Source of the DNA: Phallusia mammillata
Taxonomy: Eukaryota
NCBI GenBank assembly: GCA_965637545.1
Contig: OZ281501.1
Location: 8,308,001-8,372,000, forward strand
Direction of reading: 5' to 3'
Length of the DNA stretch: 64,000 bases
The notes under the pieces are model-generated. The model saw nothing but the letters and a program-made list of their open reading frames with translations, made no database searches and was not told the origin of the DNA. Every line of letters starts with the position of its first letter. Within the stretch, counting starts at the first letter, position 1. Below are positions 16,737 through 19,900 of the stretch, piece after piece. The translations under genes were made by a program, and so were the position numbers.

Positions 16737-16988
16737 TCAAATCAGTCTTTCACAGGGTGGAGGGGGTTTAAGTTCGGTCCAAACCTCGGACTCCAAGCGA
16801 CCCCCCAAACCAGGAGGGGCAGATGAAGTTTCCTGCTTGCTAGGGGAGTAGGTGCCAGATGTAGCGCGTCTCTCCAGAGCAGCAGATACAGTTGCAACTG
16901 CTCCAAGGATGAGGAGTAAGAGAAGTCCAGCTCCTCCCACTGCTGCGATGAGGACGATCATGCCAGAAGACGAGAAAAGAAACAAATC
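16737..16988 (-). CDS. crb: Crumbs terminal exon B (canonical TM + cytoplasmic tail)
   Basis: Acceptor TTTCTTATAG|GAT (phase 0). Encodes [53 protein letters not shown]...[11 protein letters not shown]. Confidence 0.92.
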   Translation of the reverse strand, partial: DLFLFSSSGMIVLIAAVGGAGLLLLLILGAVATVSAALERRATSGTYSPSKQETSSAPPGLGGRLESEVWTELKPPPPCERLI

Positions 16989-19900
16989 CTATAAGAAATA
17001 TATGTAAATCTAAAATATGTTGAAAGCTATATTGGGGCTGGGCTTGGGTTTCCAAGTTTGAGCAATATTTGTCAGTGGTGTGCTAGTTTATGCATGAAGG
17101 TGGGCAGAAATCTTAACACGAAACGAGTTACAGAACCATATTAAAACCACTCCTCTAAGCTTTACTGTCCGAAAAATAAAAATCTATTTTACTTGAACTT
17201 AAAACTATAATTATGCGCACTTTTTCACCATGGTTTCGGCAAAAAAGGGCTGATGTACAAGCCGTTTTGGCTTGCAAATTCGTACACGGTAAGTTTTGTC
17301 ACTGTTACTATGTGTTATGCTCACGTTGTTATGTGAGCCCTTACAGACAACTTAAGCTTCTGACATCACGAGGCGTTACTATGACAGCAACAGACAACAC
17401 CGCCATGCAACACCAATTACAAGAATAAGAAACTATAAATATCCGAATCACCCATGCGCGACCACACCGGCACGTGAGCGCATTGTTCATCACGTGACAT
17501 TTACGTAAATGCGTCGACCTTATTTCGTCACCATTGACGTATCTTGAAGCAGTCATGCGGAACGTGTCTGGTGGCAAAACACGTTTCAAAACGACACACC
17601 ATCTAAATATACGTGAGACCGACAAGAACATGCCACACAAACCGTCAAATAAGCCTTTCGGGTGGTTGTTTAGGGGGTATTGGGGTGGACTGGGTGATAG
17701 CCATACTCTCAGTCTGCTGGGGACTGTAAACCCCCCTGTTAGCACGTGCCCCACGTGCGTAACACACAGCTGATGTCACAACTGCTATTATTAAGATGAA
17801 GACAACAGCCCCAATGATGGAACCGACGATCGTCCACGGGTTGCTTTCCAGCAGTGATCTTACCTTTATGATAGGGTTTCTGTATTTTAACTTTTTTTGC
17901 ACATTCTAATGCATGAATTTCCTTGCGATTTAAAGTCGATGGACTGAACAATTTTTTACAAACGACGGGTTCGATGCGCAAAAAATTAAGCTATGGTGTC
18001 AGCGTCCTTTTGATGGATTCATGGTGATAGTAAAAACTTATAATGTGTAACAACAAATTTGGTCCAAAAAGGCAACGTACATTTAAGTTTGGATTTAAAC
18101 TAAGTAACAGCTAACGACTGTCAATTATTCAAAATTTTAGTAACTTGTGAACAATTTCAACACTCATTTTTTAAATGTAATTTTTCCTTGATATTACGAG
18201 TTTCTTATTGTGATGTCAAAATGACGTTTAAAACCATTTTATTCGTCATGGAAGTAAGTCTTACCGAGTCGCAAAATTCGCCGGAATATCCAGACATGCA
18301 TTGGCACATAGCTTTTGGATGCATTTCCCCTCCTGATGTCACGGGCTGTGTTACTACGTTACAAATCCCTCCGTTGTTGCATGTGTAGTTGAGACACGGG
18401 TTGGGAAACTCGCATGTGGCACCTAAGAACAAAATACCGCTACATGTACTTATGATACTGTGAAAACCAATGATAAACGCAAAACCGCCGCATGGTGATT
18501 CATTAATTTAAAATGTCAAAAATATGGGCAATCAGCCAAAGATTACTTTTCGCAATCCGCGTGTAGGAACATTTTAACATATATGCACATATGATTGCAT
18601 TTGCACAACTGAAACAATAGAAATAGTGGGCTTAAAAAGACTTGTGACAGAAAAGCAATAATAATTCCATTTTAGGAAGTTTGTAGCAGCACACATGGTT
18701 GCCTCAAGCAATAAGGAAAACTTCTGGCTGTTCGGTTAAATCACCACAAAGAAATGAAGTGTTCAAGTGGATTAAAACATGGTTTTGGGTTTTTTCACAG
18801 CCGGAGGATCCAGACACATAGAAGGCAACGCGACCGGTTCTTTATTGCCATCGTGTGGCCGATCCAACTGTATAAGTCAGGTGATTTACCTGCATGTTGT
18901 TCTGTACATTTGCAGCTGTAAGCCGGCATTCCTTCACGATCCAATTCCACTTGACATTTGCCATTGTTGGCGCATAAAGAAGCGCTTCGCTTCGATAAAC
19001 ACAGGTTGTTGTATTCACACGTCACACCGATAAAACCTGACGGCAGAGGAAAATATATTTTACCCGAGATTTCAAAACCAGCTCTAATTTCATAATTCTT
19101 TACTTTACACATTTAATGAGAAATATTATACTGGTAATAAGTTTTTATTTATGTGTTATTTATTACTATTATTTTAATTGTTTACTTATAACAAAACAAC
19201 TTAATTTTGTAAACTGCATTTACCTTTAATACATGTACATTGGTGACCGCTTCCGTTGTCATGGCAACTACCGTTATTTTGACACGGTGAACTCGAACAT
19301 TGACCAATCCACGTTTGACACGTCACTCCAGTATAGCCTTGTGCGCATGCGCATTGATGCGACATCACCGTCTGCAATTGAAATTTAATTTTAAAGCAAT
19401 AGAAAGCAAAAGTTTTTACGTGAAACTTACCTTATTTGCAATACACGTCGAATTGTTTTCACACGAGTTATTTTCACACGGGTCCATCTCAACGTCGCAT
19501 TTTCTTCCAGTAAACGGCAAATTGCACGAACACAAAAACGAAACCTGTAAGGTAATTTTGTTTTGGTCTTTATACAATGGCGTAATGTAACAGTTTATTA
19601 GAATTTGCCAAATTATGTTTGTTATCACTGGCCTATGTTATAACATCAATTCAACGTTTTCTTAATCAATTTTAATAAATTGATGTCGTTTTCGAGGCAA
19701 TTTTTTGTATCATGAAGTATTGAGTAAATACCAAAACCCGTTCCACGTAACATAATGTATGCATGCTAAGGGCAAGAAACAGGGGTTAATCATCAGTACA
19801 GATGATCGCAGTTCTAATCTAGCCGTTAACATTAAACACAATATGGTGTTCCTAGATGTTTTAAGATTACATGTACGACGTAACAAAATATCGGTGGCCA

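Follow-up and report, generated by a model that had tools for sequence, protein, structure and literature searches.

The cytoplasmic tail of Crumbs, about 37 residues long, sets apical identity via a FERM-binding site, target sites for aPKC and a C-terminal ERLI motif, and the roles of these features have so far been separated mainly by engineered mutants. Vertebrates distribute variants of this tail over three genes, and fly Crumbs isoforms differ in their extracellular part and have one common cytoplasmic domain. Alternative splicing of mammalian CRB3 gives rise to CRB3-ERLI (CRB3A) and CRB3-CLPI (CRB3B) (PMC2064851). A study on Drosophila describes tissue- and stage-specific expression of fly crumbs isoforms such as Crb_C, and asks how a single fly gene can do the work that is shared by three paralogs in mammals (PMC5312091). 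Here we describe the crumbs gene of Phallusia mammillata on the minus strand of a 64,000-nucleotide (nt) stretch of contig OZ281501.1 (assembly GCA_965637545.1, positions 8,308,001 to 8,372,000), the whole of which is referred to below as the window and numbered from its first letter. This one gene very likely carries two alternative modules at its 3' end, each made up of a transmembrane helix and a cytoplasmic tail, with the choice between them made by a cassette exon.

The two tails, A and B, are like those of vertebrate CRB1, CRB2 and CRB3 in being slightly differing, ERLI-ending variants with the same GTYSP..E core, tail B being closest to CRB1-type tails (RATQGTYSPSRQE...EMW...PPP.ERLI); the vertebrate variants are in separate genes, however, whereas here they are found in one gene as an alternative exon. 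In contrast to fly crumbs, where the extracellular part varies, the end of the ectodomain is common to both forms and it is the helix and tail that differ. The likeness to Drosophila lies in one long gene of the invertebrate type that is diversified by alternative splicing (PMC5312091). The locus is also like mammalian CRB3, a single Crumbs gene with two cytoplasmic ends obtained via 3' alternative splicing (PMC2064851), but CRB3B ends in CLPI, loses ERLI and keeps the same helix, whereas here helix and tail are exchanged together and the FERM core and ERLI are present in both forms. A literature search found no Crumbs gene that exchanges one ERLI tail for another, the reported isoforms either changing the ectodomain or losing ERLI (gene models of the species may list both forms), and almost nothing on tunicate Crumbs.

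Transcript evidence for a cassette exon

The crumbs gene consists of cysteine-rich EGF-like exon frames with laminin G pieces, from about 47241 down to 18265. Several of these upstream exons match Pfam EGF above the cut-off; partial matches to Laminin_G_2 and Laminin_G_3 fall short of the cut-off, since this domain is divided among exons. As a whole, the gene has the ectodomain typical of the Crumbs family, with EGF-like repeats interspersed with laminin G domains. Downstream of it and on the same strand are two stop-free frames, 17905-17648 (tail A) and 16988-16740 (tail B), each of which combines a single hydrophobic helix with a G[VT]YSP...E motif and has ERLI at the C-terminus, directly before a TGA. 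An earlier sequence-based reading of this locus (the original prediction) had picked out the helix, FERM motif and ERLI of both frames, and these are real: among the 943 open frames of at least 35 amino acids within the whole window, just these two have an ERLI ending or G.Y.P...E, and chance is therefore excluded. The exons and introns concerned are as follows, a slash marking an exon border.

18265..18420, minus strand: last EGF-like exon; phase 0 end in ...FCDS, donor GAC TCG/GTAAGA; weak Pfam EGF-type matches; joints 18420 to 18888 and 18265 to 16988 or 17863 in four runs
17864..18264, minus strand: intron between the last EGF-like exon and exon A; 401 nt, GT..AG; seen in X1, X9 and X17
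17864..17905, minus strand: 42-nt exon proposed in the original prediction; open in frame, lies at the 3' end of the preceding intron; no joint
17643..17863, minus strand: exon A, the cassette exon; 221 nt, 72 amino acids, ...KQPPERLI, TGA at 17647-17645, then 2 nt to the donor
16989..17642, minus strand: intron between exon A and the tail B exon (A-B intron); 654 nt, GT..AG; partly covered by low-depth unspliced contigs
16030..16988, minus strand: terminal exon; tail B, 83 amino acids, stop at 16739-16737; contigs end near 16028-16068

RNA evidence was taken from Logan contigs of four runs (X1, X5, X9 and X17) of four studies, placed on 14800-19700. The run records give no RNA label, but the crumbs introns 18421-18887, 19035-19221 and 19372-19430, all with GT..AG borders, are absent from the contigs and the runs are therefore RNA. 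The joint of 18265 to 16988, from the last EGF-like exon to the tail B exon, is present in all four runs, including a 1447-nt contig of X5 that contains four EGF exons and the tail B exon. This junction had been anticipated, as had the phase-0 end of the EGF-like exon at 18265 and the phase-0 acceptor of the tail B exon at 16988.

In three of the four runs (X1, X9 and X17; three studies) the last EGF-like exon is also joined to exon A, 18265 to 17863, placing tail A in continuity with the upstream crumbs exons. The two sides of this joint have seven letters in common (GGTAAGA; raw joint 17857 to 18259, cut +6), and the sole GT..AG placement within this ambiguity puts the AG at 17865-17864; the AAAG/GTAAGA motif therefore acts as an acceptor, where the original prediction had read AAG/GTAAGA as a donor at 17864. 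Exon A opens with GTA AGA TCA (VRS), in frame after ...FCDS. The same three runs join 17643 to 16988 (raw joint 16987 to 17642, cut +1) from the exon A donor ACG/GTTTGT, 2 nt past the TGA of tail A. All three joints are canonical GT..AG on the minus strand, so that inclusion and skipping junctions with canonical sites are found in RNA from three to four studies. Contigs of 251-278 nt in X1, X9 and X17 consist of 27 nt of the tail B exon, the whole of exon A and 35 nt of the EGF-like exon, the classic pattern of the bubble that a cassette exon leaves in an assembly. Both joined frames are open to the stop codon, ...FCDS-VRSLL...ERLI and ...FCDS-DLFLF...ERLI.

The k-mer depths of exon A versus skipping were 28.9 versus 62.2 in X1, 9.2 versus 10.8 in X9, 14.2 versus 47.5 in X17 and 0 versus 9 in X5; on these rough depths, inclusion is ~0.2-0.45 in three runs and exon A is the minor form in all of them. 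The two branches of X1 (28.9 and 62.2) sum to the depth of the upstream exons (90.5). Contig depth is 0 across 17916-18243. No differences were found in exon A over 216 nt in three runs, which is too few sites to test constraint. Contigs over the terminal exon run from 16028, 16055 or 16068 to 16989, their ends lying close to a AATATAATTAAT stretch; in agreement with the AATAAA absence reported in the original prediction, neither AATAAA nor ATTAAA is found on the minus strand between 18238 and 15619. The contigs thus show directly the exon limits, the three junctions and, in several studies, both forms; both proteins are presumably produced.

Following skipping of exon A, with 18265 spliced to 16988, tail B would be translated (T6 and T9 in Drosophila numbering, an EVW stretch, a cytoplasmic domain of ~46 amino acids, ERLI); inclusion would exchange helix and tail for a shorter version (N6, V9, a cytoplasmic domain of ~38 amino acids, ERLI). 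The length of exon A, 221 nt, is 2 modulo 3 and its own stop precedes the frame change: on inclusion the TGA at 17647-17645 would end translation, and splicing to 16988 would turn the whole tail B exon into 3' untranslated region. The two forms would share this region, as had been suggested; it becomes common to both through the splicing of exon A, 2 nt past its stop codon, to the tail B exon, and not, as the same suggestion had it, through intron retention. Under the 50-nucleotide rule, a stop so near the last junction normally gives no nonsense-mediated decay, and by that rule the exon A mRNA, with its stop just 2 nt before the junction, should therefore escape it.

Comparison of the two tails

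18265 being the common end of the ectodomain, the features that differ between the two forms are the following.

17759..17833, minus strand: transmembrane helix of tail A; best 19-residue Kyte-Doolittle window mean 2.95; 25 residues
17708..17746, minus strand: FERM-binding motif of tail A; N6, R7, G8, V9, Y10, S11, P12, Q13, E16 in Drosophila numbering, by alignment
17648..17659, minus strand: PDZ-binding ERLI of tail A; ...KQPPERLI then TGA
16875..16961, minus strand: transmembrane helix of tail B; best 19-residue Kyte-Doolittle window mean 2.87; 29 residues
16830..16868, minus strand: FERM-binding motif of tail B; T6, S7, G8, T9, Y10, S11, P12, S13, E16, by alignment to 4wsi and CRB1-type tails
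16740..16751, minus strand: PDZ-binding ERLI of tail B; ...PPPPCERLI then TGA

Each frame thus has the single transmembrane helix, the short cytoplasmic domain (~38 amino acids to the stop in tail A and ~46 in tail B) and the C-terminal PDZ-binding ERLI of a Crumbs protein. Tail B matched the fly Crumbs tail of two PDB entries, 4wsi (E 0.023) and 4yl8. For tail A, a search of PDB sequences up to E 10 gave chance hits on transmembrane segments and no Crumbs match, and Pfam, which has no model of the Crumbs tail, gave nothing meaningful for either. A relation between the tails was suggested by direct comparison, with E 0.002 in a single BLASTP comparison, z 6.9 for the global alignment versus shuffles and ~30% of residues in common. 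Tail A also matched the tails of relatives by tblastn (E 3e-7 to 1e-5, in a tiny database), and its closest ESM Atlas cluster in a feature search was 'crumbs homolog 1-like' (score 0.97).

Ten tails were aligned: A, B, three of the vertebrate CRB1 type and five from relatives that resemble tail B. Residues R4, G8, Y10, S11, P12 and E16, one proline and ERLI are invariant in it, tail A included. All five residues of the FERM-binding core (R7, G8, Y10, P12 and E16) are in register in tail A, as judged from sequence; tail B has G8, Y10, P12 and E16 together with T6 and T9, and S, not R, at position 7. Y10 and R7 are needed to recruit Moesin (PMC3564977), and Y10/P12/E16 define Crumbs FERM-binding mutants (PMC3564977, PMC4718732). 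T6 and T9 are required for fly Crumbs to be phosphorylated by aPKC in vitro (PMC2172211); tail A has N6 and V9 at these positions and is also without the EVW/EMW stretch. By alignment, tail A keeps the FERM- and PDZ-binding residues without the two aPKC-target threonines, and the two tails may differ in regulation. A Crumbs-type tail exon of a relative, with a diverged FERM motif (RRKQSGEYSPNATE) and PPCERLI kept, was observed in contigs L006 and L007, from Tara and other marine metagenomes.

Relatives and origin of exon A

An HMMER search with tail B against 1.84 billion representatives returned frames the size of a tail (P0001-P0005), which came from marine metagenomes and one Logan assembly, and vertebrate CRB1-type tails (P0006-P0011); no full-length tunicate Crumbs was among the matches, only tail-sized fragments. 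A scan of JGI metagenome contigs with tail B confirmed nothing. Tail B is the conserved form because it is carried by the marine-metagenome relatives and resembles vertebrate CRB1 tails. The contigs of relatives are short and the last intron is spanned in L004 only, which contains the tail exon together with the final two EGF exons: the last EGF exon ends at 3007 and is followed by a 266-nt intron and a single phase-0 exon with helix and tail from 3274. In L003, the 806 nt upstream of the tail exon hold no A-like frame.

Similarity between the DNA of the A and B exon ends is found mainly at GAAAG.CT.ATTTGACG around the two stops and ceases ~5 nt past the stop codon; the alignment of these ends gave no sign that the flanks had been duplicated. 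A common phase-0 start, the layout and the invariant residues suggest that exon A was copied from the tail B exon, and the original prediction of a duplicated terminal exon serving as an isoform switch is borne out to the extent that tail A has, in the alignments, the look of a helix and tail exon that was copied and then diverged. Exon A may have arisen as such a copy that gained a donor just after its stop. If so, divergence would have been fast. Exon A is either confined to a narrower lineage or has been lost in the species of L004.

Splice sites and neighbouring sequence

The splice sites of exon A are weak at both ends, with an A-rich tract before AAAG/G and the donor GTTTGT; the acceptor of tail B has a T-rich tract. 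Four GCATG motifs, one of them TGCATG, lie in the first 235 nt of the A-B intron (17404-17633, minus strand), compared with a gene-wide density of 0.67 per kb and none in the intron upstream of exon A (P ~0.03, Markov simulation). This cluster could be the arrangement expected of an Rbfox-type downstream inclusion enhancer, and inclusion of exon A may be regulated by the weak sites at both ends together with it.

Other features of the A-B intron were observed. Its GC content is 0.41 versus 0.31 in the upstream intron, and the proximal half (17470-17620) is GC-richer; of the eight ACGT cores in this interval, two are CACGTG and one is TTACGTAA. Near 17440-17400 come a TATA-like ATATTTATAG and an ATG frame, and no transcript start was seen there in the contigs. 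The palindrome TGACGTCA has 11 copies in the window versus 0.8 expected; one copy (16732-16739) overlaps the tail B stop codon, with the same overlap at the stop of relative L001 (281-288), and several more fall within frames of EGF exons and may there stand for C-D-V codons. The interval 14800-15300, past the 3' end of crumbs, has very high contig depth with many loose ends and differences in all four runs and looks like a repeated element. The X1 and X17 contigs leave out 44 nt at 15538-15583, inside an A-rich tandem stretch (tttctcaaaaaaa...), a single letter separating the two sides; this looks like a length polymorphism within a low-depth transcribed stretch, 15199-15718.

Discussion

The contigs agree with the original prediction that both tails belong to one crumbs transcription unit and that the choice between them is made by alternative splicing, joining the EGF-like exon to exon A and on to B, or directly to B. 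They differ from it in the nature of the switch. In the mechanism that had been put forward, the 42-nt exon at 17905-17864 is spliced in and its donor AAG/GTAAGA is either used, yielding tail B, or read through with retention of an 875-nt intron, yielding tail A. The frame 17905-17648 is indeed open, an AG at 17907-17906 could be an acceptor, GTAAGA resembles a donor, and contigs drop rare variants, such that a minor form using 17905 could escape detection; this mechanism nevertheless seems very improbable to us, as the EGF-like exon joins 17863 and not 17905 in three studies, a joint of 17864 to 16988 is not listed among the contig joints, and tail A is an exon whose own donor, after 17643, is used in the same three runs. 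A low-depth contig of X1 (16962-17671), unspliced from exon A into the tail B exon, might seem to speak for retention; it covers the A-B intron, which is not the intron of that mechanism, and would still encode tail A, leaving the protein unchanged. A still smaller chance, close to nil, attaches to tail B (or A) being the product of a small gene of its own, CRB3-like or trans-spliced, situated downstream of long crumbs. Such a gene would fit the ATG that the tail B frame contains immediately ahead of its helix (MIVLIAAV...) and the TATA-like box and ATG within the A-B intron, but contigs of the four runs have no joint that starts inside this intron, and they join EGF exons directly to 16988, as in the long X5 contig, or to exon A and on to B; on these joints we reject a separate-gene or trans-splicing origin of tail B. 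What the contigs display is instead a cassette exon, 17863-17643, that is included or skipped.

Several observations weigh against this account. Each junction is spanned in contigs, not raw reads, by 27-35 letters on the short side; the depths are rough, and contigs give neither strand nor transcript ends. Exon A is absent in X5, where the depth of 9 may represent low coverage. It was found in no relative in searches of limited reach, so that conservation is lacking as a sign of function: the last intron of L004, complete at 266 nt, has no trace of exon A and no room for it, a word-index protein search with tail A, covering proteins of 40-126 amino acids only, gave no match, and a scan of JGI metagenome contigs with tail A confirmed nothing. 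Loss of T6 or T9 is also not peculiar to tail A, as the sole tails of P0002 (N6), P0004 (A9) and P0005 (Q6, E9) are without one or both, and the argument from aPKC is therefore weakened; flies and vertebrates hold the threonines more constant than this group does, so that they are a variable feature and not a strict criterion.

Given these points, inclusion of exon A could be real in RNA and functionless, exon A being a young, lineage-specific exonised copy of the terminal exon that is tolerated as its stop near the junction escapes decay. The absence of exon A from L004 and from the other searches, its weak splice sites and its status as the minor form in all runs are in keeping with this explanation, which we nonetheless consider unlikely. 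Despite ~30% identity between A and B, tail A keeps every residue that is invariant across Crumbs tails, an intact helix and an ERLI directly before the stop, a pattern that points to selection on the protein; moreover, inclusion at the level estimated in three studies is high for splicing noise. We therefore continue to favour one crumbs gene with two alternative helix and tail modules chosen by a cassette exon.

As in other stop-containing cassette exons, an internal exon with a stop turns a downstream coding exon into 3' untranslated region, and this mechanism is ordinary. Such exons usually lead to truncation or an unrelated end, whereas here exon A encodes a complete paralogous version of the module whose place it takes, and its stop lies 2 nt from the donor; what is unusual is a complete paralogous copy of helix and tail that keeps every binding residue. 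The pair of tails is a real addition to Crumbs isoform diversity, and the two may differ in function. A more specific model, which we put forward tentatively and think considerably less likely to hold than to fail, would have one ectodomain serving two intracellular programmes: tail B would be ancestral and switchable by aPKC, and tail A lineage-specific, non-phosphorylatable at positions 6 and 9 and constitutive in FERM binding, with Pals1 bound via ERLI and tissue-specific inclusion via the GCAUG (Rbfox-type) cluster. If true, the gene would be a natural single-gene counterpart both of the fly T6A/T9A mutants and of the division of labour between vertebrate paralogs.

This natural two-tail gene holds the FERM core and ERLI constant and varies the aPKC threonines, the middle stretch, the length and the helix. 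The roles of the tail features may thereby be tested by isoform, in an animal with a single long crumbs gene, and exon A would illustrate a route from duplication of a terminal exon to a switch, by way of a donor arising just after the stop codon.

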